The position numbers and the translations under genes were made by a program. DNA of 64,000 nt from contig OZ059894.1 of assembly GCA_964057225.1 (NCBI GenBank), positions 11,160,001 through 11,224,000 of the forward strand, read 5' to 3'. Source of the DNA: Auanema rhodensis (taxonomy: Eukaryota > Animalia > Nematoda). Of the stretch, positions 1 to 61,875 are shown one piece after another (within the stretch, counting starts at the first letter, position 1; each line of letters begins with the position of its first letter). The notes under the pieces are model-generated. The model was not told the origin of the DNA and made no database searches. It saw nothing but the letters and a program-made list of their open reading frames with translations.

Positions 1-1
1 A

Positions 2-13431: not shown

Positions 13432-13939
13432 ATCGAAGGTTAATTCGATAAGAACGATTACTACACTTTGATCTTAGCCAATAGGCCGAGAAGCGATACA
13501 GCATAGCCATGAGTATCAAAGACATCAAGCAAATGTATCGTACTTGTTACGAGTGCACTCTCTCATTTGAATATAAAAGTGTGGTTTGACAATCTTGACT
13601 GTACAGGTCATAAATGGCTCATATAAACTGTGGATTTACTCAACTTTTGGACTTATTTTTTTCTTATTCGAAGCGCTGCACTTTTTTCTATTCTTTTTAT
13701 TCAAATACTTGTATATAGTTTTATATGTACGGTTGCAAAGTTTCCGAATATTTTATATATTTTTATACAATAATTAGGAGAAGGTTAATACAATGAAATC
13801 TCCCAACTTTACAGTGTTTGTATTGCTTACAGTATCTAGAACAACCACTCTTGTAATATTAGAGCACATATCAATCAACAACTTTTTCTAGTTATCAAAG
13901 CTTTTTTATTTCTTCAAGATATTTCAAATAAAATATAAA

Positions 13940-19650: not shown

Positions 19651-19709
19651 TTAACCTTATTGTGAACCAATGGAACACATATCGAAGGTTAATTCGATAA
19701 GAACGATTA

Positions 19710-22700: not shown

Positions 22701-23058
22701 TCGGCGCCTTTGTCGGAAGTTGGGAACTTTGATCATAATGTCAAGAGACTTTCTGATTGTGTCTACCAACTCTTCCAGGACCTGCTCGAGCTCACTTTTG
22801 CACACTACCTTTTTAATTCTATCCACCCAAATATTTTCAGAGTTTCTATTCGGATCAGGGTCGGCAAAAGATGGTTCTGTACTCGGAACCCTGATCTCGT
22901 TGAATATTTCACTCTCTCGCGGAAGGGGGGAAACTTCGGCCTCTGGGGACAAGTCCAGAATTGGGGCCTCAAACAAGCGTACCGTTGATGGAGATCCTTG
23001 TTCCTGTCCACTGGATGATGTTTCCTCCATTGTACGCTCCTCCACGGGCGGGGTGGTC
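19710..23058 (-). mobile_element. Utopia-like element, slightly 5'-truncated (zinc fingers lost)
   Basis: Joined to U2 nt 39 through 4 extra bases (23059-23062). Confidence 0.93.
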
Positions 23059-23063
23059 CACAT
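20106..23063 (-). CDS. N-terminally truncated RT-endonuclease ORF
   Basis: The track start (23132) lies upstream of U2 +1. The first ATG within a U2-initiated transcript is created at the junction (MWTTPP). Confidence 0.7.
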   Translation of the reverse strand: MWTTPPVEERTMEETSSSGQEQGSPSTVRLFEAPILDLSPEAEVSPLPRESEIFNEIRVPSTEPSFADPDPNRNSENIWVDRIKKVVCKSELEQVLEELVDTIRKSLDIMIKVPNFRQRRRPHTQPEEDQKTQAMKIQKLWRANKKKAFRQLLGEQSETCTIPSADVEKHFLSVHSSQGPALPITVTRPDLPTSTDPLEGVFTPLEVWERIRRCSDTAPGADGLRYSHWKKFDQGGHILAAIFNTVHKLGHIPFSWKESTTVLIHKKGDKADINNWRPIALSCTIGKTYSACLTHRLLTWARAEKRLSPSQKGFVAKAGCMEHNFLLQSTIADAKRKREKIAIAWLDLANAFGSLPHETLLDVLRWSGMAEASISRVRALYTDASTRIQTGSGLTSTIPVHAGVLQGSPLSPILFNLAIEPLIKTILETSTGYKLHNHNIAVLAYADDLALVSSSSEDLQKMLDAASNAANFTGLTFKPAKCATLTIDKGKISTASYMLQSCFLPALSKFDSYSHLGIPTGMHLHKSAVPTVNIMSQHLEKIDKSLLAEWQKADAVRTFLMPCLNFHMTNGHVPKSKLVAFDKELKRCARRWMHYPPNASAEPIYLPTNYGGLGLSRLQHLSDVCEVTHAYQLLKSSDLVVADIAHQDSIKVASKRIKRQASNDETAAYYNGSVDGIFDTETSDVSSIWTRVRVAMRQLKKLINANWTCLESGLELNLNNQLLTPSLCHRSLRRALWLKDLRILLQKPDQGKVFDVTMLNKASNHFMAKGDFIRFADWRFIHKARLNTLQLNGCRRHGEGNKQCRRCSYPNETAAHVLGHCHFHTRAIQLRHNNIVDRLIKALPEPKNGEVYTNQPLPGINSTLRPDIVVVDHDAKHCSIVDVTVSYENRRQAMIAARMIKERKYADIASQYQCLGYKTSVEAYVVGMLGTMDPLNVQALRSLKISSHYNRLMEKLVVADTIKWARNIYVEHVSGVRQYEEEIIH

Positions 23064-23543
23064 ACTACACTTTGATCTTAGCCAAAAGGCCGAGAAGCGA
23101 TACAGCATAGCCATGAGTATCAAAGACATCAAGCAAATGTATCGTACTTGTTACGAGTGCACTCTCTCATTTGAATATAAAAGTGTGGTTTGACAATCTT
23201 GACTGTACAGGTCATAAATGGCTCATATAAACTGTGGATTTACTCAACTTTTGGACTTATTTTTTTCTTATTCGAAGCGCTGCACTTTTTTCTATTCTTT
23301 TTATTCAAATACTTGTATATAGTTTTATATGTACGGTTGCAAAGTTTCCGAATATTTTATATATTTTTATACAATAATTAGGAGAAGGTTAATACAATGA
23401 AATCTCCCAACTTTACAGTGTTTGTATTGCTTACAGTATCTAGAACAACCACTCTTGTAATATTAGAGCACATATCAATCAACAACTTTTTCTAGTTATC
23501 AAAGCTTTTTTATTTCTTCAAGATATTTCAAATAAAATATAAA

Positions 23544-25938: not shown

Positions 25939-26000
<62 letters not shown>

Positions 26001-27189: not shown

Positions 27190-27373
27190 TGGGCCGTTCC
27201 CGCCAGCAGTGCAAGAGCGGGTCGACCCGTGAGGTGGAGCTAGCAAGCCAGCATCTACCTCAAGTCTCAAAAATCGGTTAACCTTATTGTGAACCAATGG
27301 AACACATATCGAAGGTTAATTCGATAAGAACGATTACTACACTTTGATCTTAGCCAAAAGGCCGAGAAGCGAT
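27190..27373 (-). ncRNA. U2: U2 snRNA, intact
   Basis: Same as 8629-8812. Confidence 0.97.
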
Positions 27374-39297: not shown

Positions 39298-39339
39298 CAA
39301 TGGAACACATATCGAAGGTTAATTCGATAAGAACGATTA

Positions 39340-42300
39340 ATGGTTTATTGAATAACTAATGTTATGAAACAATAAATAACCAATAAAAAAGAGCCCAGAA
39401 TCGGGGAGACGGTATTACCAGTACAACTTAAAACAGCAAGTGATTAAAAAGTACAAAATAAAACACATTACCAACAGAGGCTAAAACGACTCAAGAGTCG
39501 GGGGAGTGGGTTAAAAAAAGTAATGAATAACAAAAAAAATGAATAATAAAGCAGAACAGTGAAAAGTAAATATCAAGTGCCGCTATGATCAAACAATTTG
39601 AGTGCCTACGGCAATGGTGTTAAAAATAAACAACAAAATACATGTACCAATGAAGGTCAGAAAGAGAGAAAGAAAAAAGACAAAAATAAGTAATACAAAA
39701 AGTAAAAAATATATTACAATCAAATCACAAACAAGTCAATGGATAATTTCTTCTTCATACTGCCTTACACCAGAAACATGTTCCACGTAGATATTCCTGG
39801 CCCACTTGATGGTATCGGCGACGACGAGCTTCTCCATTAGCCGGTTGTAGTGGCTGCTGATCTTGAGTGATCGGAGGGCTTGTACGTTGAGCGGGTCCAT
39901 AGTTCCAAGCATTCCTACGACATACGCTTCTACACTAGTCTTATAACCAAGACATTGGTATTGGCTGGCTATGTCAGCATATTTCCTCTCCTTTATCATA
40001 CGCGCGGCTATCATGGCTTGTCGGCGGTTTTCATAGCTCACTGTAACATCAACGATACTACAGTGTTTTGCGTCATGATCGACCACTACTATGTCAGGTC
40101 GGAGTGTACTATTAATGCCAGGAAGAGGCTGGTTAGTGTAAACTTCTCCGTTTTTAGGCTCTGGCAGGGCTTTGATAAGACGGTCCACGATGTTGTTGTG
40201 GCGGAGTTGGATTGCTCTCGTGTGAAAGTGGCAGTGTCCAAGAACATGTGCAGCAGTTTCGTTGGGGTAACTACACCTGCGGCACTGTTTGTTTCCTTCT
40301 CCGTGTCTTCTACAGCCATTGAGCTGGAGAGTATTAAGTCGAGCCTTGTGGATGAATCGCCAATCAGCAAACCGTATGAAATCTCCCTTCGCCATAAAGT
40401 GATTGGACGCTTTGTTGAGCATTGTGACATCAAAGACTTTCCCTTGATCCGGTTTTTGAAGAAGGATCCGAAGGTCTTTCAGCCATAATGCACGTCGCAG
40501 GCTTCTGTGGCATAGTGAAGGTGTTAACAGTTGGTTGTTTAGATTGAGTTCTAAACCACTTTCGAGGCATGTCCAGTTAGCGTTGATGAGTTTCTTGAGT
40601 TGACGCATCGCTACTCTTACTCTAGTCCAGATGGAGGAAACATCAGATGTTTCGGTGTCGAAAATGCCATCAACGGAACCGTTGTAATATGCAGCTGTCT
40701 CATCGTTACTGGCTTGACGTTTAATCCTTTTTGATGCTACTTTTATTGAGTCTTGATGCGCAATATCAGCTACTACAAGATCAGATGACTTCAAAAGTTG
40801 GTAGGCATGAGTGACTTCACAGACGTCTGACAGGTGTTGGAGTCGAGAGAGACCAAGTCCGCCGTAGTTGGTTGGCAGGTAGATTGGTTCAGCACTGGCG
40901 TTTGGAGGATAGTGCATCCATCTACGGGCACAGCGTTTGAGTTCTTTGTCAAAGGCGACTAGTTTACTCTTTGGGACGTGGCCATTCGTCATATGAAAAT
41001 TAAGGCAGGGCATCAGGAAGGTGCGTACTGCGTCAGCTTTCTGCCATTCAGCCAGTAAGGATTTGTCAATTTTTTCCAAGTGTTGACTCATGATATTCAC
41101 TGTTGGAACCGCAGACTTATGTAAATGCATTCCAGTAGGGATTCCCAGGTGGGAGTAGCTGTCAAATTTGCTGAGAGCGGGTAGAAAGCAGCTCTGAAGC
41201 ATGTATGAGGCTGTTGATATTTTCCCTTTGTCGATCGTCAAAGTGGCGCATTTCGCTGGTTTGAAGGTCAAGCCTGTGAAATTAGCCGCATTTGATGCTG
41301 CGTCCAACATTTTCTGTAGATCTTCTGATGATGAGGAGACCAGGGCAAGGTCATCGGCGTACGCTAGCACAGCGATGTTGTGATTGTGTAGCTTATAGCC
41401 TGTAGAGGTTTCCAAGATGGTTTTAATTAGAGGTTCAATGGCAAGGTTGAACAGGATCGGAGATAGTGGGGATCCTTGTAACACACCTGCGTGAACTGGA
41501 ATGGTCGAAGTGAGTCCGGAGCCTGTCTGGATTCTTGTAGAGGCATCTGTGTATAGAGCTCGTACTCGGGATATTGAGGCTTCAGCCATTCCTGACCATC
41601 TTAGAACGTCTAGCAGAGTTTCGTGTGGCAGCGATCCAAAAGCGTTTGCGAGATCAAGCCAAGCAATTGCAATTTTCTCACGTTTACGTTTAGCGTCTGC
41701 AATGGTACTTTGCAACAAAAAGTTGTGTTCCATGCATCCAGCTTTGGCCACAAAGCCCTTTTGGGAGGGAGAAAGTCTTTTTTCTGCTCTTGCCCATGTT
41801 AGCAGTCGATGCGTAAGACAAGCTGAGTACGTCTTACCAATTGTGCACGAAAGTGCTATTGGTCGCCAGTTGTTAATGTCAGCTTTATCACCTTTCTTAT
41901 GGATGAGGACGGTGGTCGACTCTTTCCAGGAAAAAGGGATGTGTCCTAGCTTGTGTACGGTGTTAAATATCGCTGCTAATATGTGACCTCCTTGGTCAAA
42001 TTTCTTCCAGTGCGAGTATCGAAGTCCATCAGCTCCTGGAGCCGTATCGCTGCAACGTCGTATGCGTTCCCAGACTTCCAAAGGGGTGAAAACACCTTCT
42101 AATGGGTCGGTACTAGTTGGCAAATCCGGTCTGGTGACTGTGATGGGGAGGGCTGGGCCTTGACTGCTGTGAACAGAAAGGAAGTGTTTTTCAACATCTG
42201 CAGATGGTATGGTGCAGGTTTCACTTTGTTCTCCGAGCAGTTGTCGAAAGGCTTTCTTCTTGTTGGCCCTCCAAAGCTTCTGGATCTTCATCGCCTGGGT

Positions 42301-43066
42301 TTTTTGGTCTTCCTCAGGTTGTGTGTGTGGTCGGCGCCTTTGTCGGAAGTTGGGAACTTTGATCATAATGTCAAGAGACTTTCTGATTGTGTCTACCAAC
42401 TCTTCCAGGACCTGCTCGAGCTCACTTTTGCACACTACCTTTTTAATTCTATCCACCCAAATATTTTCAGAGTTTCTATTCGGATCAGGGTCGGCAAAAG
42501 ATGGTTCTGTACTCGGAACCCTGATCTCGTTGAATATTTCACTCTCTCGCGGAAGGGGGGAAACTTCGGCCTCTGGGGACAAGTCCAGAATTGGGGCCTC
42601 AAATAAGCGTACCGTTGATGGAGATCCTTGTTCCTGTCCACTGGATGATGTTTCCTCCATTGTACGCTCCTCCACGGGCGGGGTGGTCGTCCTTGTGCCT
42701 GGTGGGCGGGTGTTCCTGATCCTCCGCAATATAGGGCGGGAACTGGGCTCTCTCGGAGATAGAGGTGAGATCACCACAGTTTCCTCTATGATGCGGAGGC
42801 ATCCTTCAGCTTTTTTCTGATGGCTTTTAACGGCCTTCAGATTGTTGGTGAGGCCACAGGCACGGCACTCAAATTCTACTCCGACCTCATGTTCTCTCCG
42901 AAGATGGCGGACGAGACCATTGTGGTCTGAGTAGGATCGCGGAATAGGAGCGCAGATTGAACAAGAAAAAGGGCTCTGAAGAGGCACCTTTAGCTTGTAA
43001 AGCCCTTGCTCCATCTCTAGCAGATCTAAAGACTTACGTAGTACAGTTGCAATATCGATTTAGCCA
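39340..43066 (-). mobile_element. Utopia-like element, full length
   Basis: Same structure as 15924-19650. Confidence 0.95.
39736..43014 (-). CDS. ZnF-RT-RLE polyprotein (1092 aa)
   Basis: Motifs as in 16320-19598. Confidence 0.96.
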   Translation of the reverse strand: MEQGLYKLKVPLQSPFSCSICAPIPRSYSDHNGLVRHLRREHEVGVEFECRACGLTNNLKAVKSHQKKAEGCLRIIEETVVISPLSPREPSSRPILRRIRNTRPPGTRTTTPPVEERTMEETSSSGQEQGSPSTVRLFEAPILDLSPEAEVSPLPRESEIFNEIRVPSTEPSFADPDPNRNSENIWVDRIKKVVCKSELEQVLEELVDTIRKSLDIMIKVPNFRQRRRPHTQPEEDQKTQAMKIQKLWRANKKKAFRQLLGEQSETCTIPSADVEKHFLSVHSSQGPALPITVTRPDLPTSTDPLEGVFTPLEVWERIRRCSDTAPGADGLRYSHWKKFDQGGHILAAIFNTVHKLGHIPFSWKESTTVLIHKKGDKADINNWRPIALSCTIGKTYSACLTHRLLTWARAEKRLSPSQKGFVAKAGCMEHNFLLQSTIADAKRKREKIAIAWLDLANAFGSLPHETLLDVLRWSGMAEASISRVRALYTDASTRIQTGSGLTSTIPVHAGVLQGSPLSPILFNLAIEPLIKTILETSTGYKLHNHNIAVLAYADDLALVSSSSEDLQKMLDAASNAANFTGLTFKPAKCATLTIDKGKISTASYMLQSCFLPALSKFDSYSHLGIPTGMHLHKSAVPTVNIMSQHLEKIDKSLLAEWQKADAVRTFLMPCLNFHMTNGHVPKSKLVAFDKELKRCARRWMHYPPNASAEPIYLPTNYGGLGLSRLQHLSDVCEVTHAYQLLKSSDLVVADIAHQDSIKVASKRIKRQASNDETAAYYNGSVDGIFDTETSDVSSIWTRVRVAMRQLKKLINANWTCLESGLELNLNNQLLTPSLCHRSLRRALWLKDLRILLQKPDQGKVFDVTMLNKASNHFMAKGDFIRFADWRFIHKARLNTLQLNGCRRHGEGNKQCRRCSYPNETAAHVLGHCHFHTRAIQLRHNNIVDRLIKALPEPKNGEVYTNQPLPGINSTLRPDIVVVDHDAKHCSIVDVTVSYENRRQAMIAARMIKERKYADIASQYQCLGYKTSVEAYVVGMLGTMDPLNVQALRSLKISSHYNRLMEKLVVADTIKWARNIYVEHVSGVRQYEEEIIH

Positions 43067-43476
43067 TTAACCTTATTGTGAACCAATGGAACACATATCG
43101 AAGGTTAATTCGATAAGAACGATTACTACACTTTGATCTTAGCCAAAAGGCCGAGAAGCGATTGACGTAGAGAATGTTTGTTCCGAAAAACTACAATATT
43201 AAACTATAAAAGTAACAAAAGCGTAGAGGCAGCAAAGACATGAATAAACATAAATGTAAATACAGAATTACCAGGTAGTACATAAGTATGACAAAAAATT
43301 ATAAGAAAGCCATGAAAATAGAAGGTTTGTGAACAAATGAGAGGTACATCTTTGATCGTATAGTCATTTCTAAACCGTTCGTATGCTGCAGCATCGTCAT
43401 AAGCGTCACTCAAGTTGAATTTCCATGTGTACTACACGATTTTCATTCTTATTGTTACATTCTTTCCCTGAGGGAA

Positions 43477-44565
43477 TGGGCCGTTCCCGCCAGCAGTGCA
43501 AGAGCGGGTCGACCCGTGAGGTGGAGCTAGCAAGCCAGCATCTACCTCAAGTCTCAAAAATCGGTTAACCTTATTGTGAACCAATGGAACACATATCGAA
43601 GGTTAATTCGATAAGAACGATTTATTGAAGTAGGAAATGTTTTGCCCCGTAGGACTACAAGTAAATATTATCTAGCACAAGGCTATTAGAGAATGATAAG
43701 ATACTACCTGCACTAAGTGCGTCGCATCGTAAAGGGAAAAAAATTAAACAATGGGAGTTTAACAGCATGAAATTGAGAGAAAAGACATATCCGAGTGTGA
43801 ATAAAATTACGGGTGAACGGAACATGGAGTACGAGAGACATACAAAACGAGACTAAGTGAAAAGAAAAAGTCTTGTATCACGTTCATGAAGGTTCGACGG
43901 ATCCGGTAAGAAGCTGCGGGTTCAGAAGGTCAGCTTTCATCTCGTAGTCGTGGCGCATCAGGAATTTGTGAAGCTTTCCGGCTTTGCAGACGGCTGTATT
44001 GGTCCTCGTAGGATGGTGGAAGATGTTGTCGCTTAGTGATGTTACACATAAAGATATGCAAAAATAGAACAATTCAAAGAAAAAGAGCACAATTAAAACG
44101 AGATTTGGAGAGAAGAGAAGTCTTATATCACTTTCGATGGTTCGGAAGCTCCAGTCTGCTGCTGCGGTTTAGGGGGTGCAACTGGCATGTCGGAGGCGTA
44201 GCACATCATAGGTCAAGCTTGCTGGACTCCCGGCTCGGCTGGTGGCTGTGAGTTTTCCTTGTGCTTGTTCTCGGTGGTGGTCCCTGGGCTGTCTCTTCAC
44301 CAAAAATTACTATACTAATTGCACATTTCATTTAAACGACCCATTTCAGAAGCTTTAAGAGGAAAAGCTACAATTAGCATAGGACCGCCTCAAGGCCTGG
44401 TGGATCATTCAATTTAGTTTCAATCGCCAAGTATAGCGGCCTGGGCCCTTGGGTCAATTCACTGAACCAGTGTAGTATCGATTGTTCAATGGAACACATA
44501 TCGAAGGTTAATTCGATAAGAACGATTACTACACTTTGATCTTAGCCAAAAGGCCGAGAAGCGAT
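43477..44565 (-). pseudogene. U2: U2 interrupted by family A element
   Basis: U2 39-end 43477-43622; U2 1-79 44487-44565. Confidence 0.92.
43623..44486 (-). mobile_element. Non-autonomous element family A (864 bp)
   Basis: Matches 29799-30663 apart from an A-run length. Confidence 0.88.
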
Positions 44566-45007
44566 ACAGCATAGCCATGAGTATCAAAGACATCAAGCAA
44601 ATGTATCGTACTTGTTACGAGTGCACTCTCTCATTTGAATATAAAAGTGTGGTTTGACAATCTTGACTGTACAGGTCATAAATGGCTCATATAAACTGTG
44701 GATTTACTCAACTTTTGGACTTATTTTTTTCTTATTCGAAGCGCTGCACTTTTTTCTATTCTTTTTATTCAAATACTTGTATATAGTTTTATATGTACGG
44801 TTGCAAAGTTTCCGAATATTTTATATATTTTTATACAATAATTAGGAGAAGGTTAATACAATGAAATCTCCCAACTTTACAGTGTTTGTATTGCTTACAG
44901 TATCTAGAACAACCACTCTTGTAATATTAGAGCACATATCAATCAACAACTTTTTCTAGTTATCAAAGCTTTTTTATTTCTTCAAGATATTTCAAATAAA
45001 ATATAAA

Positions 45008-45126
45008 AGCTTACGACACCCGGGATTCCCAAGCCGTCTCCGATCCAAGTACTAACCGGGCCCAACGTTGCTTGACTTGCCAGATCGGACGGGATGGCGT
45101 ACTTTCAACGTGGTATGGTCGTAAGC
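45008..45126 (-). rRNA. 5S rRNA
   Basis: Same sequence as the first copy. Confidence 0.97.
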
Positions 45127-45367
45127 AATGTTATATTCTTCATTATCAGTTATATCACTCTAAATCTTGTTGTTAATAGTTAGGACCACAAAGAAAACAA
45201 CAGGAACAGTAACAAATGAAATGCCCAAACTTTACAGTGTTCGAGTTATTTACAGTATCTAAGACTACCTCTGTCGTGTTATTAGAGCAAACATTCGATT
45301 AACAACAACTTTTTTTTAGTTATCAAAGCTTTTTTATTTCTTCAAAAAATTTCAAATAAAATATAAA

Positions 45368-45486
45368 AGCTTACGACACCCGGGATTCCCAAGCCGTCTC
45401 CGATCCAAGTACTAACCGGGCCCAACGTTGCTTGACTTGCCAGATCGGACGGGATGGCGTACTTTCAACGTGGTATGGTCGTAAGC
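45368..45486 (-). rRNA. 5S rRNA
   Basis: Same sequence as the first copy. Confidence 0.97.
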
Positions 45487-46978
45487 AATGTCATATTCTT
45501 CATTATCAGTTATATCACTCTAAATCTTGTTGTTAATAGATACGACCACAAAGAAAACAACAGGAACAGTAACAATAACAAAAAAAATTTTTTTTTCACC
45601 TATGTGTCTAAAGGTTAGCCATGTATCCGTTTATATATATATATATATCAACAGTAAAAAGTCCAATCAAGAGAGAAATTTTTTCAACACATAGTTGTTT
45701 TTTTTTTAAATATCATTGTTTTTCCTCATAACTCGGTTTAAACTCGTTCTAACCCGTTGAAATACGTCTAGAAAGTCTTTATAACATGCATATGTATGAT
45801 AGAACTTCATATTTATTGTAATAGAAAATTTTATTTTCAGACGTCTTGGTTAACAATGATATGTTTTACCCCCTTATAATTTTTATCATAATGTTCCTTA
45901 TACGGAACGCTCAATGAAACTTGCTTCCAGAAAAATTTCTTTCTATTTTTTCTTCATATGTACGTAGATACTATAGAGAACTATGATAGAAAACTTTAAC
46001 ATTCACGAAATCATCATTTCTCATTACGCTACGGAGGTTTAAAAAGCTGTGTTTTACCTTATAATAGACCGGAAAACCCTTGTGTTAAAACTGGACCGTT
46101 TTTACACATATAAAAATGTCCCGTATTCGGGACCCTAATGTAACTTTTGATTCCCTATATTTTTTTTCATGAAATTTACAATCTACTGTAGAAAGAAGAA
46201 TTATTTTTATAAAAACTGTAAATTTTTGAAAAATGAAAACAAAACGAAAACAAAAACAACTTTTTTTTGAACATTTTCTCACACAAGGGTCCCCCCTTAC
46301 CTACTTTTTTTCTCATTACTCGTTTCAACCTCATCCGATCACTCTGCAAACATGTTTAATCGTTCTAACTTGTTGAAATACGTCTTAAAAGTCTAAACAA
46401 CATGCATATGCATAATAGAAACCACCCGAATAGGCCCCCACGCACTAAACGAGATATATACATTACCAGTATAGTAATAGAACACATATTGAAGATTAAT
46501 TCGATAAGAACAATTTATTGACGTAGAGAATGTTTGTTCCGAAAAACTACAATATTAAACTATAAAAGTAACAAAAGCGTAGAGGCAGCAAAGACATGAA
46601 TAAACATAAATGTAAATACAGAATTACCAGGTAGTACATAAGTATGACAAAAAATTATAAGAAAGCCATGAAAATAGAAGGTTTGTGAACAAATGAGAGG
46701 TACATCTTTGATCGTATAGTCATTTCTAAACCGTTCGTATGCTGCAGCATCGTCATAAGCGTCACTCAAGTTGAATTTCCATGTGTACTACACGATTTTC
46801 ATTCTTATTGTTACATTCTTTCCCTGAGGGAATGGGCCGTTCCCGCCAGCAGTGCAAGAGCGGGTCGACCCGTGAGGTGGAGCTAGCAAGCCAGCATCTA
46901 CCTCAAGTCTCAAAAATCGGTTAACCTTATTGTGAACCAATGGAACACATATCGAAGGTTAATTCGATAAGAACGATT

Positions 46979-47842
46979 TATTGAAGTAGGAAATGTTTTG
47001 CCCCGTAGGACTACAAGTAAATATTATCTAGCACAAGGCTATTAGAGAATGATAAGATACTACCTGCACTAAGTGCGTCGCATCGTAAAGGGAAAAAAAT
47101 TAAACAATGGGAGTTTAACAGCATGAAATTGAGAGAAAAGACATATCCGAGTGTGAATAAAATTACGGGTGAACGGAACATGGAGTACGAGAGACATACA
47201 AAACGAGACTAAGTGAAAAGAAAAAGTCTTGTATCACGTTCATGAAGGTTCGACGGATCCGGTAAGAAGCTGCGGGTTCAGAAGGTCAGCTTTCATCTCG
47301 TAGTCGTGGCGCATCAGGAATTTGTGAAGCTTTCCGGCTTTGCAGACGGCTGTATTGGTCCTCGTAGGATGGTGGAAGATGTTGTCGCTTAGTGATGTTA
47401 CACATAAAGATATGCAAAAATAGAACAATTCAAAGAAAAAGAGCACAATTAAAACGAGATTTGGAGAGAAGAGAAGTCTTATATCACTTTCGATGGTTCG
47501 GAAGCTCCAGTCTGCTGCTGCGGTTTAGGGGGTGCAACTGGCATGTCGGAGGCGTAGCACATCATAGGTCAAGCTTGCTGGACTCCCGGCTCGGCTGGTG
47601 GCTGTGAGTTTTCCTTGTGCTTGTTCTCGGTGGTGGTCCCTGGGCTGTCTCTTCACCAAAAATTACTATACTAATTGCACATTTCATTTAAACGACCCAT
47701 TTCAGAAGCTTTAAGAGGAAAAGCTACAATTAGCATAGGACCGCCTCAAGGCCTGGTGGATCATTCAATTTAGTTTCAATCGCCAAGTATAGCGGCCTGG
47801 GCCCTTGGGTCAATTCACTGAACCAGTGTAGTATCGATTGTT
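46979..47842 (-). mobile_element. Non-autonomous element family A (864 bp)
   Basis: Matches the other A copies. Confidence 0.88.
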
Positions 47843-47884
47843 CAATGGAACACATATCGAAGGTTAATTCGATAAGAACGATTA

Positions 47885-50800
47885 ATGGTTTATTGAATAA
47901 CTAATGTTATGATACAATAAATAACCAATAAAAAAGAGCCCAGAATCGGGGAGACGGTATTACCAGTACAACTTAAAACAGCAAGTAATTAAAAAGTACA
48001 TAATAAGACACATTGCCAACAGAGGCTAAAACGACTCAAGAGTCGGGGGAGTGGGTTAAAAAAAATGAACAAAAAAATGAATATTAAAGCAGAACAATGA
48101 GAAATCAAGTGCCGCTATGATCAAACAATTTGAGTGCCTACGGCAATGATGTTAAAAATAAACAACAAAATACATGTACCAATGAAGGTCAGAAAGAAAG
48201 AAACAAAAGACAAAAATAAGTAATACAAAAAGTAAATACATTACAATCAAATCACAAACAAGTCAATTGATAATTTCTTCTTCATACTGCCTTACACCAG
48301 AAACATGTTCCACGTAGATATTCCTGGCCCACTTGATGGTATCGGCGACGACGAGCTTCTCCATTAGCCGGTTGTAGTGGCTGCTGATCTTGAGTGATCG
48401 GAGGGCTTGTACGTTGAGCGGGTCCATAGTTCCAAGCATTCCTACGACATACGCTTCTACACTAGTCTTATAACCAAGACATTGGTATTGGCTGGCTATG
48501 TCAGCATATTTCCTCTCCTTTATCATACGCGCGGCTATCATGGCTTGTCGGCGGTTTTCATAGCTCACTGTAACATCAACGATACTACAGTGTTTTGCGT
48601 CATGATCGACCACTACTATGTCAGGTCGGAGTGTACTATTAATGCCAGGAAGAGGCTGGTTAGTGTAAACTTCTCCGTTTTTAGGCTCTGGCAGGGCTTT
48701 GATAAGACGGTCCACGATGTTGTTGTGGCGGAGTTGGATTGCTCTCGTGTGAAAGTGGCAGTGTCCAAGAACATGTGCAGCAGTTTCGTTGGGGTAACTA
48801 CACCTGCGGCACTGTTTGTTTCCTTCTCCGTGTCTTCTACAGCCATTGAGCTGGAGAGTATTAAGTCGAGCCTTGTGGATGAATCGCCAATCAGCAAACC
48901 GTATGAAATCTCCCTTCGCCATAAAGTGATTGGACGCTTTGTTGAGCATTGTGACATCAAAGACTTTCCCTTGATCCGGTTTTTGAAGAAGGATCCGAAG
49001 GTCTTTCAGCCATAATGCACGTCGCAGGCTTCTGTGGCATAGTGAAGGTGTTAACAGTTGGTTGTTTAGATTGAGTTCTAAACCACTTTCGAGGCATGTC
49101 CAGTTAGCGTTGATGAGTTTCTTGAGTTGACGCATCGCTACTCTTACTCTAGTCCAGATGGAGGAAACATCAGATGTTTCGGTGTCGAAAATGCCATCAA
49201 CGGAACCGTTGTAATATGCAGCTGTCTCATCGTTACTGGCTTGACGTTTAATCCTTTTTGATGCTACTTTTATTGAGTCTTGATGCGCAATATCAGCTAC
49301 TACAAGATCAGATGACTTCAAAAGTTGGTAGGCATGAGTGACTTCACAGACGTCTGACAGGTGTTGGAGTCGAGAGAGACCAAGTCCGCCGTAGTTGGTT
49401 GGCAGGTAGATTGGTTCAGCACTGGCGTTTGGAGGATAGTGCATCCATCTACGGGCACAGCGTTTGAGTTCTTTGTCAAAGGCGACTAGTTTACTCTTTG
49501 GGACGTGGCCATTCGTCATATGAAAATTAAGGCAGGGCATCAGGAAGGTGCGTACTGCGTCAGCTTTCTGCCATTCAGCCAGTAAGGATTTGTCAATTTT
49601 TTCCAAGTGTTGACTCATGATATTCACTGTTGGAACCGCAGACTTATGTAAATGCATTCCAGTAGGGATTCCCAGGTGGGAGTAGCTGTCAAATTTGCTG
49701 AGAGCGGGTAGAAAGCAGCTCTGAAGCATGTATGAGGCTGTTGATATTTTCCCTTTGTCGATCGTCAAAGTGGCGCATTTCGCTGGTTTGAAGGTCAAGC
49801 CTGTGAAATTAGCCGCATTTGATGCTGCGTCCAACATTTTCTGTAGATCTTCTGATGATGAGGAGACCAGGGCAAGGTCATCGGCGTACGCTAGCACAGC
49901 GATGTTGTGATTGTGTAGCTTATAGCCTGTAGAGGTTTCCAAGATGGTTTTAATTAGAGGTTCAATGGCAAGGTTGAACAGGATCGGAGATAGTGGGGAT
50001 CCTTGTAACACACCTGCGTGAACTGGAATGGTCGAAGTGAGTCCGGAGCCTGTCTGGATTCTTGTAGAGGCATCTGTGTATAGAGCTCGTACTCGGGATA
50101 TTGAGGCTTCAGCCATTCCTGACCATCTTAGAACGTCTAGCAGAGTTTCGTGTGGCAGCGATCCAAAAGCGTTTGCGAGATCAAGCCAAGCAATTGCAAT
50201 TTTCTCACGTTTACGTTTAGCGTCTGCAATGGTACTTTGCAACAAAAAGTTGTGTTCCATGCATCCAGCTTTGGCCACAAAGCCCTTTTGGGAGGGAGAA
50301 AGTCTTTTTTCTGCTCTTGCCCATGTTAGCAGTCGATGCGTAAGACAAGCTGAGTACGTCTTACCAATTGTGCACGAAAGTGCTATTGGTCGCCAGTTGT
50401 TAATGTCAGCTTTATCACCTTTCTTATGGATGAGGACGGTGGTCGACTCTTTCCAGGAAAAAGGGATGTGTCCTAGCTTGTGTACGGTGTTAAATATCGC
50501 TGCTAATATGTGACCTCCTTGGTCAAATTTCTTCCAGTGCGAGTATCGAAGTCCATCAGCTCCTGGAGCCGTATCGCTGCAACGTCGTATGCGTTCCCAG
50601 ACTTCCAAAGGGGTGAAAACACCTTCTAATGGGTCGGTACTAGTTGGCAAATCCGGTCTGGTGACTGTGATGGGGAGGGCTGGGCCTTGACTGCTGTGAA
50701 CAGAAAGGAAGTGTTTTTCAACATCTGCAGATGGTATGGTGCAGGTTTCACTTTGTTCTCCGAGCAGTTGTCGAAAGGCTTTCTTCTTGTTGGCCCTCCA

Positions 50801-51593
50801 AAGCTTCTGGATCTTCATCGCCTGGGTTTTTTGGTCTTCCTCAGGTTGTGTGTGTGGTCGGCGCCTTTGTCGGAAGTTGGGAACTTTGATCATAATGTCA
50901 AGAGACTTTCTGATTGTGTCTACCAACTCTTCCAGGACCTGCTCGAGCTCACTTTTGCACACTACCTTTTTAATTCTATCCACCCAAATATTTTCAGAGT
51001 TTCTATTCGGATCAGGGTCGGCAAAAGATGGTTCTGTACTCGGAACCCTGATCTCGTTGAATATTTCACTCTCTCGCGGAAGGGGGGAAACTTCGGCCTC
51101 TGGGGACAAGTCCAGAATTGGGGCCTCAAATAAGCGTACCGTTGATGGAGATCCTTGTTCCTGTCCACTGGATGATGTTTCCTCCATTGTACGCTCCTCC
51201 ACGGGCGGGGTGGTCGTCCTTGTGCCTGGTGGGCGGGTGTTCCTGATCCTCCGCAATATAGGGCGGGAACTGGGCTCTCTCGGAGATAGAGGTGAGATCA
51301 CCACAGTTTCCTCTATGATGCGGAGGCATCCTTCAGCTTTTTTCTGATGGCTTTTAACGGCCTTCAGATTGCTGGTGAGGCCACAGGCACGGCACTCAAA
51401 TTCTACTCCGACCTCATGTTCTCTCCGAAGATGGCGGACGAGACCATTGTGGTCTGAGTAGGATCGCGGAATAGGAGCGCAGATTGAACAAGAAAAAGGG
51501 CTCTGAAGAGGCACCTTTAGCTTGTAAAGCCCTTGCTCCATCTCTAGCAGATCTAAAGACTTACGTAGTACAGTTGCAATATCGATTTAGCCA
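47885..51593 (-). mobile_element. Utopia-like element, full length, mosaic 3' UTR
   Basis: ORF body of the major type; 3' end resembles the 11596 copy. Confidence 0.95.
48263..51541 (-). CDS. ZnF-RT-RLE polyprotein (1092 aa)
   Basis: Motifs as in 16320-19598. Confidence 0.96.
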   Translation of the reverse strand: MEQGLYKLKVPLQSPFSCSICAPIPRSYSDHNGLVRHLRREHEVGVEFECRACGLTSNLKAVKSHQKKAEGCLRIIEETVVISPLSPREPSSRPILRRIRNTRPPGTRTTTPPVEERTMEETSSSGQEQGSPSTVRLFEAPILDLSPEAEVSPLPRESEIFNEIRVPSTEPSFADPDPNRNSENIWVDRIKKVVCKSELEQVLEELVDTIRKSLDIMIKVPNFRQRRRPHTQPEEDQKTQAMKIQKLWRANKKKAFRQLLGEQSETCTIPSADVEKHFLSVHSSQGPALPITVTRPDLPTSTDPLEGVFTPLEVWERIRRCSDTAPGADGLRYSHWKKFDQGGHILAAIFNTVHKLGHIPFSWKESTTVLIHKKGDKADINNWRPIALSCTIGKTYSACLTHRLLTWARAEKRLSPSQKGFVAKAGCMEHNFLLQSTIADAKRKREKIAIAWLDLANAFGSLPHETLLDVLRWSGMAEASISRVRALYTDASTRIQTGSGLTSTIPVHAGVLQGSPLSPILFNLAIEPLIKTILETSTGYKLHNHNIAVLAYADDLALVSSSSEDLQKMLDAASNAANFTGLTFKPAKCATLTIDKGKISTASYMLQSCFLPALSKFDSYSHLGIPTGMHLHKSAVPTVNIMSQHLEKIDKSLLAEWQKADAVRTFLMPCLNFHMTNGHVPKSKLVAFDKELKRCARRWMHYPPNASAEPIYLPTNYGGLGLSRLQHLSDVCEVTHAYQLLKSSDLVVADIAHQDSIKVASKRIKRQASNDETAAYYNGSVDGIFDTETSDVSSIWTRVRVAMRQLKKLINANWTCLESGLELNLNNQLLTPSLCHRSLRRALWLKDLRILLQKPDQGKVFDVTMLNKASNHFMAKGDFIRFADWRFIHKARLNTLQLNGCRRHGEGNKQCRRCSYPNETAAHVLGHCHFHTRAIQLRHNNIVDRLIKALPEPKNGEVYTNQPLPGINSTLRPDIVVVDHDAKHCSIVDVTVSYENRRQAMIAARMIKERKYADIASQYQCLGYKTSVEAYVVGMLGTMDPLNVQALRSLKISSHYNRLMEKLVVADTIKWARNIYVEHVSGVRQYEEEIIN

Positions 51594-52092
51594 TTAACCT
51601 TATTGTGAACCAATGGAACACATATCGAAGGTTAATTCGATAAGAACGATTACTACACTTTGATCTTAGCCAAAAGGCCGAGAAGCGATATCGTACTTGT
51701 TACGAGTGCACTCTCTCATTTGAATATAAAAGTGTGGTTTGACAATCTTGACTGTACAGGTCATAAATGGCTCATATAAACTGTGGATTTACTCAACTTT
51801 TGGACTTATTTTTTTCTTATTCGAAGCGCTGCACTTTTTTCTATTCTTTTTATTCAAATACTTGTATATAGTTTTATATGTACGGTTGCAAAGTTTCCGA
51901 ATATTTTATATATTTTTATACAATAATTAGGAGAAGGTTAATACAATGAAATCTCCCAACTTTACAGTGTTTGTATTGCTTACAGTATCTAGAACAACCA
52001 CTCTTGTAATATTAGAGCACATATCAATCAACAACTTTTTCTAGTTATCAAAGCTTTTTTATTTCTTCAAGATATTTCAAATAAAATATAAA

Positions 52093-52211
52093 AGCTTACG
52101 ACACCCGGGATTCCCAAGCCGTCTCCGATCCAAGTACTAACCGGGCCCAACGTTGCTTGACTTGCCAGATCGGACGGGATGGCGTACTTTCAACGTGGTA
52201 TGGTCGTAAGC
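52093..52211 (-). rRNA. 5S rRNA
   Basis: Same sequence as the first copy. Confidence 0.97.
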
Positions 52212-52452
52212 AATGTTATATTCTTCATTATCAGTTATATCACTCTAAATCTTGTTGTTAATAGTTAGGACCACAAAGAAAACAACAGGAACAGTAACAA
52301 ATGAAATGCCCAAACTTTACAGTGTTCGAGTTATTTACAGTATCTAAGACTACCTCTGTCGTGTTATTAGAGCAAACATTCGATTAACAACAACTTTTTT
52401 TTAGTTATCAAAGCTTTTTTATTTCTTCAAAAAATTTCAAATAAAATATAAA

Positions 52453-56929: not shown

Positions 56930-59900
56930 ATGGTTTATTGAATAACTAATGTTATGAAACAATAAATAACCAATAAAAAAGAGCCCAGAATCGGGGAGAC
57001 GGTATTACCAGTACAACTTAAAACAGCAAGTGATTAAAAAGTACAAAATAAAACACATTACCAACAGAGGCTAAAACGACTCAAGAGTCGGGGGAGTGGG
57101 TTAAAAAAAGTAATGAATAACAAAAAAAATGAATAATAAAGCAGAACAGTGAAAAGTAAATATCAAGTGCCGCTATGATCAAACAATTTGAGTGCCTACG
57201 GCAATGGTGTTAAAAATAAACAACAAAATACATGTACCAATGAAGGTCAGAAAGAGAGAAAGAAAAAAGACAAAAATAAGTAATACAAAAAGTAAAAAAT
57301 ATATTACAATCAAATCACAAACAAGTCAATGGATAATTTCTTCTTCATACTGCCTTACACCAGAAACATGTTCCACGTAGATATTCCTGGCCCACTTGAT
57401 GGTATCGGCGACGACGAGCTTCTCCATTAGCCGGTTGTAGTGGCTGCTGATCTTGAGTGATCGGAGGGCTTGTACGTTGAGCGGGTCCATAGTTCCAAGC
57501 ATTCCTACGACATACGCTTCTACACTAGTCTTATAACCAAGACATTGGTATTGGCTGGCTATGTCAGCATATTTCCTCTCCTTTATCATACGCGCGGCTA
57601 TCATGGCTTGTCGGCGGTTTTCATAGCTCACTGTAACATCAACGATACTACAGTGTTTTGCGTCATGATCGACCACTACTATGTCAGGTCGGAGTGTACT
57701 ATTAATGCCAGGAAGAGGCTGGTTAGTGTAAACTTCTCCGTTTTTAGGCTCTGGCAGGGCTTTGATAAGACGGTCCACGATGTTGTTGTGGCGGAGTTGG
57801 ATTGCTCTCGTGTGAAAGTGGCAGTGTCCAAGAACATGTGCAGCAGTTTCGTTGGGGTAACTACACCTGCGGCACTGTTTGTTTCCTTCTCCGTGTCTTC
57901 TACAGCCATTGAGCTGGAGAGTATTAAGTCGAGCCTTGTGGATGAATCGCCAATCAGCAAACCGTATGAAATCTCCCTTCGCCATAAAGTGATTGGACGC
58001 TTTGTTGAGCATTGTGACATCAAAGACTTTCCCTTGATCCGGTTTTTGAAGAAGGATCCGAAGGTCTTTCAGCCATAATGCACGTCGCAGGCTTCTGTGG
58101 CATAGTGAAGGTGTTAACAGTTGGTTGTTTAGATTGAGTTCTAAACCACTTTCGAGGCATGTCCAGTTAGCGTTGATGAGTTTCTTGAGTTGACGCATCG
58201 CTACTCTTACTCTAGTCCAGATGGAGGAAACATCAGATGTTTCGGTGTCGAAAATGCCATCAACGGAACCGTTGTAATATGCAGCTGTCTCATCGTTACT
58301 GGCTTGACGTTTAATCCTTTTTGATGCTACTTTTATTGAGTCTTGATGCGCAATATCAGCTACTACAAGATCAGATGACTTCAAAAGTTGGTAGGCATGA
58401 GTGACTTCACAGACGTCTGACAGGTGTTGGAGTCGAGAGAGACCAAGTCCGCCGTAGTTAGTTGGCAGGTAGATTGGTTCAGCACTGGCGTTTGGAGGAT
58501 AGTGCATCCATCTACGGGCACAGCGTTTGAGTTCTTTGTCAAAGGCGACTAGTTTACTCTTTGGGACGTGGCCATTCGTCATATGAAAATTAAGGCAGGG
58601 CATCAGGAAGGTGCGTACTGCGTCAGCTTTCTGCCATTCAGCCAGTAAGGATTTGTCAATTTTTTCCAAGTGTTGACTCATGATATTCACTGTTGGAACC
58701 GCAGACTTATGTAAATGCATTCCAGTAGGGATTCCCAGGTGGGAGTAGCTGTCAAATTTGCTGAGAGCGGGTAGAAAGCAGCTCTGAAGCATGTATGAGG
58801 CTGTTGATATTTTCCCTTTGTCGATCGTCAAAGTGGCGCATTTCGCTGGTTTGAAGGTCAAGCCTGTGAAATTAGCCGCATTTGATGCTGCGTCCAACAT
58901 TTTCTGTAGATCTTCTGATGATGAGGAGACCAGGGCAAGGTCATCGGCGTACGCTAGCACAGCGATGTTGTGATTGTGTAGCTTATAGCCTGTAGAGGTT
59001 TCCAAGATGGTTTTAATTAGAGGTTCAATGGCAAGGTTGAACAGGATCGGAGATAGTGGGGATCCTTGTAACACACCTGCGTGAACTGGAATGGTCGAAG
59101 TGAGTCCGGAGCCTGTCTGGATTCTTGTAGAGGCATCTGTGTATAGAGCTCGTACTCGGGATATTGAGGCTTCAGCCATTCCTGACCATCTTAGAACGTC
59201 TAGCAGAGTTTCGTGTGGCAGCGATCCAAAAGCGTTTGCGAGATCAAGCCAAGCAATTGCAATTTTCTCACGTTTACGTTTAGCGTCTGCAATGGTACTT
59301 TGCAACAAAAAGTTGTGTTCCATGCATCCAGCTTTGGCCACAAAGCCCTTTTGGGAGGGAGAAAGTCTTTTTTCTGCTCTTGCCCATGTTAGCAGTCGAT
59401 GCGTAAGACAAGCTGAGTACGTCTTACCAATTGTGCACGAAAGTGCTATTGGTCGCCAGTTGTTAATGTCAGCTTTATCACCTTTCTTATGGATGAGGAC
59501 GGTGGTCGACTCTTTCCAGGAAAAAGGGATGTGTCCTAGCTTGTGTACGGTGTTAAATATCGCTGCTAATATGTGACCTCCTTGGTCAAATTTCTTCCAG
59601 TGCGAGTATCGAAGTCCATCAGCTCCTGGAGCCGTATCGCTGCAACGTCGTATGCGTTCCCAGACTTCCAAAGGGGTGAAAACACCTTCTAATGGGTCGG
59701 TACTAGTTGGCAAATCCGGTCTGGTGACTGTGATGGGGAGGGCTGGGCCTTGACTGCTGTGAACAGAAAGGAAGTGTTTTTCAACATCTGCAGATGGTAT
59801 GGTGCAGGTTTCACTTTGTTCTCCGAGCAGTTGTCGAAAGGCTTTCTTCTTGTTGGCCCTCCAAAGCTTCTGGATCTTCATCGCCTGGGTTTTTTGGTCT

Positions 59901-60656
59901 TCCTCAGGTTGTGTGTGTGGTCGGCGCCTTTGTCGGAAGTTGGGAACTTTGATCATAATGTCAAGAGACTTTCTGATTGTGTCTACCAACTCTTCCAGGA
60001 CCTGCTCGAGCTCACTTTTGCACACTACCTTTTTAATTCTATCCACCCAAATATTTTCAGAGTTTCTATTCGGATCAGGGTCGGCAAAAGATGGTTCTGT
60101 ACTCGGAACCCTGATCTCGTTGAATATTTCACTCTCTCGCGGAAGGGGGGAAACTTCGGCCTCTGGGGACAAGTCCAGAATTGGGGCCTCAAATAAGCGT
60201 ACCGTTGATGGAGATCCTTGTTCCTGTCCACTGGATGATGTTTCCTCCATTGTACGCTCCTCCACGGGCGGGGTGGTCGTCCTTGTGCCTGGTGGGCGGG
60301 TGTTCCTGATCCTCCGCAATATAGGGCGGGAACTGGGCTCTCTCGGAGATAGAGGTGAGATCACCACAGTTTCCTCTATGATGCGGAGGCATCCTTCAGC
60401 TTTTTTCTGATGGCTTTTAACGGCCTTCAGATTGCTGGTGAGGCCACAGGCACGGCACTCAAATTCTACTCCGACCTCATGTTCTCTCCGAAGATGGCGG
60501 ACGAGACCATTGTGGTCTGAGTAGGATCGCGGAATAGGAGCGCAGATTGAACAAGAAAAAGGGCTCTGAAGAGGCACCTTTAGCTTGTAAAGCCCTTGCT
60601 CCATCTCTAGCAGATCTAAAGACTTACGTAGTACAGTTGCAATATCGATTTAGCCA
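56930..60656 (-). mobile_element. Utopia-like element, full length
   Basis: Same structure as 15924-19650. Confidence 0.95.
57326..60604 (-). CDS. ZnF-RT-RLE polyprotein (1092 aa)
   Basis: Motifs as in 16320-19598. Confidence 0.96.
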   Translation of the reverse strand: MEQGLYKLKVPLQSPFSCSICAPIPRSYSDHNGLVRHLRREHEVGVEFECRACGLTSNLKAVKSHQKKAEGCLRIIEETVVISPLSPREPSSRPILRRIRNTRPPGTRTTTPPVEERTMEETSSSGQEQGSPSTVRLFEAPILDLSPEAEVSPLPRESEIFNEIRVPSTEPSFADPDPNRNSENIWVDRIKKVVCKSELEQVLEELVDTIRKSLDIMIKVPNFRQRRRPHTQPEEDQKTQAMKIQKLWRANKKKAFRQLLGEQSETCTIPSADVEKHFLSVHSSQGPALPITVTRPDLPTSTDPLEGVFTPLEVWERIRRCSDTAPGADGLRYSHWKKFDQGGHILAAIFNTVHKLGHIPFSWKESTTVLIHKKGDKADINNWRPIALSCTIGKTYSACLTHRLLTWARAEKRLSPSQKGFVAKAGCMEHNFLLQSTIADAKRKREKIAIAWLDLANAFGSLPHETLLDVLRWSGMAEASISRVRALYTDASTRIQTGSGLTSTIPVHAGVLQGSPLSPILFNLAIEPLIKTILETSTGYKLHNHNIAVLAYADDLALVSSSSEDLQKMLDAASNAANFTGLTFKPAKCATLTIDKGKISTASYMLQSCFLPALSKFDSYSHLGIPTGMHLHKSAVPTVNIMSQHLEKIDKSLLAEWQKADAVRTFLMPCLNFHMTNGHVPKSKLVAFDKELKRCARRWMHYPPNASAEPIYLPTNYGGLGLSRLQHLSDVCEVTHAYQLLKSSDLVVADIAHQDSIKVASKRIKRQASNDETAAYYNGSVDGIFDTETSDVSSIWTRVRVAMRQLKKLINANWTCLESGLELNLNNQLLTPSLCHRSLRRALWLKDLRILLQKPDQGKVFDVTMLNKASNHFMAKGDFIRFADWRFIHKARLNTLQLNGCRRHGEGNKQCRRCSYPNETAAHVLGHCHFHTRAIQLRHNNIVDRLIKALPEPKNGEVYTNQPLPGINSTLRPDIVVVDHDAKHCSIVDVTVSYENRRQAMIAARMIKERKYADIASQYQCLGYKTSVEAYVVGMLGTMDPLNVQALRSLKISSHYNRLMEKLVVADTIKWARNIYVEHVSGVRQYEEEIIH

Positions 60657-61875
60657 TTAACCTTATTGTGAACCAATGGAACACATATCGAAGGTTAATT
60701 CGATAAGAACGATTACTACACTTTGATCTTAGCCAAAAGGCCGAGAAGCGATACAGCATAGCCATGAGTATCAAAGACATCAAGCAAATGTATCGTACTT
60801 GTTACGAGTGCACTCTCTCATTTGAAACATGCATATGTATGATAGAACTTCATATTTATTGTAATAGAAAATTTTATTTTCAGACGTCTTGGTTAACAAT
60901 GATATGTTTTACCCCCTTATAATTTTTATCATAATGTTCCTTATACGGAACGCTCAATGAAACTTGCTTCCAGAAAAATTTCTTTCTATTTTTTCTTCAT
61001 ATGTACGTAGATACTATAGAGAACTATGATAGAAAACTTTAACATTCACGAAATCATCATTTCTCATTACGCTACGGAGGTTTAAAAAGCTGTGTTTTAC
61101 CTTATAATAGACCGGAAAACCCTTGTGTTAAAACTGGACCGTTTTTACACATATAAAAATGTCCCGTATTCGGGACCCTAATGTAACTTTTGATTCCCTA
61201 TATTTTTTTTCATGAAATTTACAATCTACTGTAGAAAGAAGAATTATTTTTATAAAAACTGTAAATTTTTGAAAAATGAAAACAAAACGAAAACAAAAAC
61301 AACTTTTTTTTGAACATTTTCTCACACAAGGGTCCCCCCTTACCTACTTTTTTTCTCATTACTCGTTTCAACCTCATCCGATCACTCTGCAAACATGTTT
61401 AATCGTTCTAACTTGTTGAAATACGTCTTAAAAGTCTAAACAACATGCATATGCATAATAGAAACCACCCGAATAGGCCCCCACGCACTAAACGAGATAT
61501 ATACATTACCAGTATAGTAATAGAACACATATTGAAGATTAATTCGATAAGAACAATTTATTGACGTAGAGAATGTTTGTTCCGAAAAACTACAATATTA
61601 AACTATAAAAGTAACAAAAGCGTAGAGGCAGCAAAGACATGAATAAACATAAATGTAAATACAGAATTACCAGGTAGTACATAAGTATGACAAAAAATTA
61701 TAAGAAAGCCATGAAAATAGAAGGTTTGTGAACAAATGAGAGGTACATCTTTGATCGTATAGTCATTTCTAAACCGTTCGTATGCTGCAGCATCGTCATA
61801 AGCGTCACTCAAGTTGAATTTCCATGTGTACTACACGATTTTCATTCTTATTGTTACATTCTTTCCCTGAGGGAA

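Follow-up and report, generated by a model that had tools for sequence, protein, structure and literature searches.

Spacer fused to U2 position +1 suggests that a Utopia-type element in a nematode U2-5S array is copied from an RNA starting at the U2 start site

We analysed a 64-kb stretch of the genome of the nematode Auanema rhodensis (contig OZ059894.1, here C1, positions 11160001-11224000; hereafter the window), taken from a 181-Mb assembly of 112 contigs. The window is part of a tandem array of U2 small nuclear RNA (snRNA) and 5S ribosomal RNA (rRNA) genes that is more than 1.2 Mb long, lies at roughly 10.9-12.3 Mb on C1 and carries copies of an inserted element, here called A. The 5' junctions of A indicate that the RNA copied during its retrotransposition probably starts at the U2 transcription start site and carries the first 96 nt of U2 (U2 1-96) as a leader, which would explain both its seamless 5' junctions and a second class in which array spacer is fused directly to U2 position +1 or its nearest neighbours. 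An earlier sequence-only reading of the window had proposed from two such junctions that reverse transcriptase reached the 5' end of a U2-initiated transcript and that the complementary DNA (cDNA) was then joined non-homologously. This proposal is now backed by seven independent junctions at U2 +1 to +4.

A scan with Rfam at the gathering score found U2 snRNA and 5S rRNA as the sole families in the window, nearly all on the minus strand. We took the reverse complement of window 25236-27373 as the reference array unit (2138 bp), in which U2 occupies 1-190 and the other 1948 nt (191-2138) hold between one and three 5S genes as well as spacer and the U2 upstream region. BLAST tiling showed that this unit and two inserted sequences, A and B, account for almost the whole window. 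Element B is 864 bp long, non-autonomous and without a long open reading frame (ORF), and is flanked by U2 1-79 and U2 39-190.

Element A is 3727 bp long, has no poly(A) tail and is flanked by U2 1-96 on its 5' side and by U2 38-190 on its 3' side. Six full-length copies lie in the window, with identities of 98.3-100% in self-BLAST. A single ORF of 1092 aa follows a 52-nt untranslated region (UTR). It matched RVT_1 of Pfam (E 5e-28), and reading of the translation revealed two N-terminal C2H2 fingers, a CCHC finger and a stretch of the PD..D..K restriction-like endonuclease (RLE) type (RPD...D...K), the latter read by eye and without a profile match. The closest solved relatives of the protein are R2 proteins (E 4e-67, two matched stretches). 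All nine 3' ends of A in the window run into U2 from nt 38, as do those in a 200-kb block (C1:10.90-11.10 Mb), and all eight 5' ends in the 264 kb that we read locally are preceded by U2 ending at nt 96, none being leaderless. By these features A is a Utopia-type (R2-like, RLE) retrotransposon that lacks long terminal repeats (non-LTR) and is predicted to nick U2 between nt 37 and 38. The leader also contains a short upstream ORF, with an ATG at U2 nt 66 and a stop at nt 87-89 (window 43097-43075, U2 nt 66-88), which precedes the start codon of A (element nt 53) and could affect translation of a U2-started RNA.

Two full-length copies in the window, A1 (3727 bp) and A2 (3709 bp), are headed by abnormal 5' junctions. 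At junction 1 (43162/43163), unit 39-500 (43622..43161) runs into U2 1-96 (43162..43067) with a 2-nt overlap; missing from this place is unit 501-2138, with its 5S genes and U2 upstream region. At junction 2 (51689/51690), unit 1489-2100 (52300..51689) runs into U2 1-96 (51689..51594) with a 1-nt overlap, and the 38-39 bp just upstream of +1 are lost, leaving U2 nt 1 next to position -39/-40. Position 1 of the Rfam U2 model falls on the junction bases in both cases. BLAST thus reproduced what had been read from the letters: U2 nt 1 fused to spacer with the promoter, the 5S genes and most of the spacer gone at junction 1, U2 nt 1 fused to upstream DNA with 39 bp deleted at junction 2, and both junctions lying 5' of full-length copies with 1-2 nt of microhomology. 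A1 and A2 are 99.2% identical and both retain the intact 1092-aa ORF; the 0.8% difference indicates that they stem from different source lineages.

The junctions recurred elsewhere in the genome. A search with U2 1-96 plus A 1-100 gave at least 40 places, and from the 40 that were scored we read 30 leader+A loci; these loci, the window and the 200-kb block formed the census material. The U2 upstream flank was normal in 21/30 leader+A copies, and in 9/30 spacer was joined to U2 +1 to +4. Two pairs within this nine-copy set are mirrors in an inverted duplication, leaving seven independent abnormal events (Table 1). Their junctions are at C1:11150529, 11203162 (window junction 1), 11211689 (window junction 2), 11282257/11249753, 11289427/11242587, 11756737 and 11793623. 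Each is flanked by array spacer that keeps the array's orientation, lies downstream of the preceding U2 and is collinear with the array. Four events have their U2 side at +1 and three have it at +2 to +4; the filler-free events have overlaps of 1-2 nt. The mirror pairs, L018/L019 and L027/L028, are exact and centred near C1 11,266,006 (C1:11.24-11.29 Mb), indicating a large inverted duplication (palindrome) within the array.

The abnormal flank was restricted to U2 copies that bear the element. Among the 31 uninserted U2 genes in the same material, none had a spacer-to-+1 flank and all were normal (Fisher p = 8e-4 with raw counts, 4.5e-3 with independent events). The sequence-only reading had staked its interpretation on +1 breakpoints not being equally frequent at uninserted genes, and on an enrichment of 5' junctions at +1. 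For the latter, the assembly gave 7/14 non-homologous element-side breakpoints within the initial 4 nt out of 3823 (p ~5e-18 if breakpoints were uniform). The normal flank, with no +1 junction, was also seen in all seven copies of B and in no fewer than 27 of a diverged relative of B, a comparison of little power because these are mostly unit duplicates. The diverged relative lies at C1:11.86-12.10 Mb with a period of ~3.3 kb, is 86% identical to B over the leader and first 100 nt, and has U2 1-79 and a normal upstream flank in every copy. This series was evidently amplified with the array units and not by separate insertions.

The 5'-truncated copies of A in the window and the 200-kb block start at nt 379, 1094 (two array copies), 1726, 1895, 2308, 2619 and 3550. 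Their upstream partners are U2 1-39 plus 4 nt, spacer 1322 with a 36-nt AT-rich filler, U2 1-20, U2 1-87, U2 1-38 plus 3-4 nt, spacer ~231, and the U2 upstream region ending at -1/+1 followed by a T-run. The element-side breakpoints are scattered, the fillers are T-rich or AT-rich, and long array losses or duplications accompany them. This scatter, together with the spike at the U2 start, indicates a cDNA population with a defined full-length end, and that end is U2 +1, not element nt 1. As fillers and losses or duplications are found at truncated copies too, imprecise 5' joining is general to A, with +1 being simply the full-length end. The sense-strand T-rich fillers would fit A-rich non-templated additions to the cDNA 3' end. 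For the copies behind U2 1-87 and U2 1-20, the best reading is an internal jump or deletion that retained part of the leader. In one of the truncated copies (C1:11024894-11024945, L043 region), A nt 2619-3727 follows directly on a spacer octamer identical to U2 nt 32-39 and sits 41 nt downstream of an intact U2; a second-strand cut at this target mimic, sparing the U2 gene, may have produced the join.

Two kinds of 5' junction are also described for R2-based insertion (R2/PRINT). There, a template 5' end with 20-30 nt of upstream target sequence yields a seamless 'Anneal' junction (PMC13486585, PMC11331408), 'Join' junctions show little microhomology, sometimes extra nucleotides, and small deletions (PMC11331408, PMC13486585), and failed second-strand nicking leads to upstream deletions or ~1 kb target duplications (PMC11331408, PMC13486585). 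The same split is seen in A, with 21 seamless junctions against 7 independent end-joined ones (21/28 and 7/28 independent events). We propose that the template RNA would be a co-transcript running from the U2 start site through the U2 1-96 leader and the 52-nt UTR into the ORF. The nick at U2 37/38 would prime reverse transcription, and the cDNA would extend to the RNA 5' end. In about three cases in four (Anneal), the complement of the leader would pair with the 5' part of U2 upstream of the nick, giving a seamless junction with what looks like a 59-bp 'target duplication' (U2 38-96), a repeat that would be passed on in the RNA. In about one case in four (Join), the cDNA end would join non-homologously to a break in another part of the array, so that spacer is fused to U2 +1 to +4 with 1-2 nt of microhomology or a few extra bases and the array loses or duplicates 0.04-2 kb. 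Both window junctions would belong to the Join class. For an RNA 5' end at +1 of an snRNA gene, the simplest source is initiation at the promoter of that gene, and we infer from the junctions both this origin of the 5' end and the annealing step.

In a tandem array, a join of spacer position X to +1 can mean that X+1..2138 was lost or that U2 38..X was duplicated. Downstream of A1, the target runs through U2 38-79, a diverged relative of B, U2 39-96, a further A and U2 38-190. It is not a copy of the B-bearing unit upstream of junction 1, so that duplication does not fit and a deletion of ~1.67 kb, counted from the nick, is required. The sequence-only reading had likewise taken junction 1 as a deletion, and its upstream unit indeed carries one short element and its target a different one plus a full element. 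Spacer 191-500 is invariant among 12 units, which makes shared single-nucleotide polymorphisms uninformative for junction 1. For junction 2, comparing the spacer above with the one below gave 2 substitutions and 2 gaps, which is no closer than between unrelated units. A whole-unit duplication, which we considered for junction 2, is unsupported, the flanking spacers being no more alike than unrelated ones; a loss of ~76 bp from the nick (the 39-bp deletion upstream of +1) is the simpler reading. Deletion or duplication, either reading leaves the placement of the RNA end at +1 untouched.

The U2 38-96 repeat on the two sides of A could be an inherited leader or a target-site duplication (TSD). 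None of the seven Join events has a target U2 upstream, and each carries the whole 1-96 leader, indicating that the leader arrived with the RNA. In two clean 5'-truncated copies the upstream U2 breaks off at nt 38 in one and nt 39 in the other, before a filler of 3-4 nt; together with the copy joined at the spacer mimic, they put the second-strand break at 1-2 nt from the first nick rather than at nt 96. The claim that the repeat is carried in the RNA therefore stands, while the constant, family-specific leader length (96 vs 79) that had been offered in its favour does not discriminate on its own. We also considered that B is mobilised by the enzyme of A, which would make the 96 and 79 lengths argue against a staggered cut, and dropped this argument because the 3' ends of A and B have only the terminal heptamer in common.

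It is unlikely that the RNA carries the leader and U2 38-96 is nonetheless a true TSD, remade at each insertion by a second-strand cut at 96/97 (79/80 in the short family). Such a cut would account for a repeat length that is constant within each family, for the copy flanked by U2 1-87 and for tandem copies that are always separated by U2 38-96, and long TSDs are found in other RLE elements, such as 126 bp in R9 (as cited in PMC13486585). Yet it leaves the two truncated copies that end U2 at nt 38/39, and the third behind the mimic of U2 32-39, without an explanation. The structure at 23101..15924 (U2 1-39, filler, A 379-3727, U2 38-96, full A, U2 38-190) is simply explained by a truncated copy inserting into a resident copy's leader, and it fits a cut beside the nick in the older leader, not a 59-nt stagger. 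Insertion into a resident leader also explains the tandems equally well: since an inherited leader contains the whole target site, tandem copies and the A-in-B and B-in-A nests would follow from it. The leader itself may plausibly have originated through a one-off long duplication.

Other explanations concern the RNA end itself. It is improbable that the 5' end at +1 results from processing of a longer read-through transcript by a ribozyme or nuclease. The genomic scars reveal where the cDNA ended and not how the RNA end arose, and the R2 5' end is made by self-cleavage of a 28S co-transcript (PMC11331408). However, every U2 gene by definition starts at +1, the normal copies retain the full U2 upstream region, and the sequence downstream of +1 is ordinary conserved U2. 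The window scan found no ribozyme family at the Rfam gathering score and no HDV-like (hepatitis delta virus-like) ribozyme at the A 5' end, with the limit that R2 ribozymes are poorly covered by Rfam. We consider it highly improbable that the junctions are post-insertion deletions, recombination products or assembly errors that carry no information on the RNA. Tandem arrays do rearrange often, and the window itself has an inversion (61905/61906) and an 824-bp deletion (60826), neither of which touches +1. Against this, seven different spacer breakpoints meet one 4-nt spot in U2, solely where the element follows; fillers and microhomologies of 1-2 nt are what end-joining of cDNA typically leaves, and two of the junctions occur in both arms of the inverted duplication.

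A template switch from the 5' end of the element to mature U2 snRNA, comparable to the U6-L1 chimeras, seems extremely improbable, although switching to abundant snRNAs is known for L1. Every event is exactly U2 1-96 fused to element nt 1, as in the normal copies, and a switch to mature U2 would begin at the U2 3' end or at variable points. 'Extra template' junctions have been seen with R2 (PMC11331408) and speak in its favour.

Several observations weigh against a U2-started template RNA or limit the evidence for it. In the copy at C1:11080886-11080903 (L049 region), A nt 3550-3727 follows a complete U2 upstream region that ends at -1/+1 and then ~13 T; this target-side breakpoint at U2 -1/+1 is not predicted by the model. 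One copy is flanked by U2 1-87. Copies in a tandem array often multiply by unit duplication, so the counts are only partly independent, and the census is partial: besides the places counted there are five more, at C1:11113963, 12032826, 12056373, 11234645 and 11299705, three of them of the leader+element kind and two of the 'U2 34-96 + element' kind. All junctions were taken from one assembly. Of the sequencing runs on record, none recorded as RNA holds the stretch. For the words of window 43000-52000, 11 DNA runs from 3 studies contain 60-88% and four possible RNA runs 8-20%, values that are not junction-specific. Promoters of the snRNA type are not known to make 4-kb translatable RNAs.

Utopia elements are U2 snRNA gene-specific non-LTR retrotransposons with an RLE, downstream of which U2 starts at nt 38/39 (PMC4640811, Kojima and Jurka 2015). 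A shares this insertion site (PMC4640811) as well as the single ORF with N-terminal zinc fingers, reverse transcriptase and a C-terminal CCHC finger plus RLE, the occasional tandem copies in U2 arrays and the commonly disrupted U2 genes. The published arthropod families have no TSD, the reptile families have 20-bp TSDs, and the 5' flanks in oomycetes could not be defined (PMC4640811), whereas in A the U2 leader is fixed at 96 nt, a repeat of 59 bp is apparent and junction scars show where the RNA 5' end lies. A second-strand break 1-2 nt from the nick in A agrees with the lack of a TSD in the arthropod families (PMC4640811). Neither promoters nor the RNA start site of Utopia are discussed in PMC4640811.

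Transcription of SLACS is reported to initiate at +1 of the interrupted spliced leader (SL) RNA gene and to continue into the element (PMC3447711). Like A, SLACS/CZAR of trypanosomes are RLE elements within an RNA polymerase II (Pol II) small-RNA gene. Full-length copies of A likewise begin at the host-gene +1, as the seven independent junctions at U2 +1 to +4 showed. SLACS/CZAR differ from A in the host gene (SL RNA against U2), in clade and in having two ORFs against one, and SLACS has RNA mapping where A has genomic cDNA-end scars only. With R2, A would share co-transcription with the host gene and host sequence at the RNA 5' end that allows the cDNA to anneal upstream. The R2 RNA end, however, is made by an HDV-like ribozyme in a Pol I transcript and that of A would be a Pol II snRNA start site; the A leader is also 96 nt long, 59 nt of which repeat the target downstream of the nick. 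A start at +1 thus has precedents in SLACS and R2 and is not described for Utopia in the one paper on the family, so that the finding refines known biology and adds no new principle.

The definition of the RNA 5' end and the upstream joining of the cDNA are the least understood steps in site-specific non-LTR retrotransposons, and they limit R2-based gene insertion. Here, a natural insertion population displays seamless annealing and imprecise joining side by side, and the template 5' end could be placed at a host-gene start site without RNA data. For Utopia, an inherited leader can pass as a long 'TSD', which would explain variable 5' boundaries and inconsistent TSDs between families.

Every unit contains a relic in its spacer (unit 455-552, window 26822-26919; 86-90% identical) that consists of a short-element 3' end, U2 39-79 and the first ~10 nt of the short element. 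It represents an old tandem-element joint that the repeat unit has retained as a fixed part. The relic's nick-equivalent position is 1-3 nt away from junction 1, and the L027 event lies at a distance of 25 nt, so that 2/7 breakpoints fall within the relic (p ~0.045). We put forward tentatively, as a possibility that we hold to be rather doubtful, that the leader acts as a natural equivalent of the '5' homology module' engineered for R2-based gene insertion and as a landing pad, and that the nuclease of A reshapes the array at pseudo-sites. The leader, driven by the Pol II snRNA promoter, may supply both the start site and seamless 5' joining, and its whole target site may turn resident copies into landing pads, from which tandems and nests would result. 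Where annealing fails, the cDNA end may be joined to second-strand breaks hundreds of bases off. Some of the Join breaks may lie at target-like sites, such as the relic near junction 1 and the mimic of U2 32-39, and the array may be reshaped by deletions and U2-sparing duplications of 0.04-2 kb.

Table 1. Positions of the junctions, elements and flanks in the window, and the seven independent events with spacer joined to the U2 start
Feature	Position	Strand	Remarks
U2 nt 1-96 leader of A1	43067..43162	-	100% match to U2 1-96; Rfam position 1 at 43162
Junction 1 upstream flank, unit 191-500	43163..43470	-	100% match
Relic, tail-like half, in last 46 nt of junction 1 flank	43161-43206	-	Relic alignment
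Full-length element A1	39340..43066	-	Self-BLAST
A1 ORF, 1092 aa	39736..43014	-	Pfam and motif reading
U2 nt 38-79, A1 3' flank (leader remnant of downstream short element)	39298..39339	-	BLAST
U2 nt 1-96 leader of A2	51594..51689	-	BLAST
Junction 2 upstream flank, unit 1489-2100	51690..52300	-	99.5% match up to unit 2100
Full-length element A2, 3709 bp	47885..51593	-	Self-BLAST; ORF 48263-51541 intact
U2 nt 38-79, A2 3' flank	47843..47884	-	Followed by 864-bp short element, 46979-47842
Unit upstream of junction 1	43471..44565	-	U2 1-79 at 44487-44565, B at 43623-44486, U2 39-190 at 43471-43622
Comparison copy, normal 5' junction with U2 upstream region	56930..60752	-	U2 1-96 at 60657-60752, element at 56930-60656
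5'-truncated copy, A nt 379-3727 behind U2 1-39 and 4-nt filler	19710..23101	-	Followed by U2 38-96 and full copy
Older copy, U2 1-87 joined to A nt 1895-3727 (97.3%)	11596..13497	-	Tiling
Event L027/L028	Spacer 475		~9 extra T; U2 side +2 to +4
Event window junction 1	Spacer 500		No extra bases; U2 side +1
Event L018/L019	Spacer 901		No extra bases; U2 side +1
Event L006	Spacer 1034		6-nt filler; U2 side +1
Event L029	Spacer 1222		No extra bases; U2 side +2 to +4
Event L026	Spacer 1373		No extra bases; U2 side +2 to +4
Event window junction 2	Spacer 2100		No extra bases; U2 side +1

Further rearrangements were seen in the array. At the inversion junction 61905/61906, minus-strand U2 155-190 adjoins plus-strand unit 1073-1844, and beyond it, from 61906 until the window ends, the array is oriented on the plus strand. 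At 60826, the spacer deletion of 824 bp joins unit 1241 to 2065 and lies 74 bp upstream of a normal leader. Stretches of 7-16 kb near 5S repeats (e.g. C1:10941963-10957720 and 11050534-11062307) interrupt the array and had no U2, spacer, A or B match. Finally, a 1548-bp insertion (window 31821-33368) interrupts the spacer at unit 1410/1421 and matches neither U2, spacer, A nor B.

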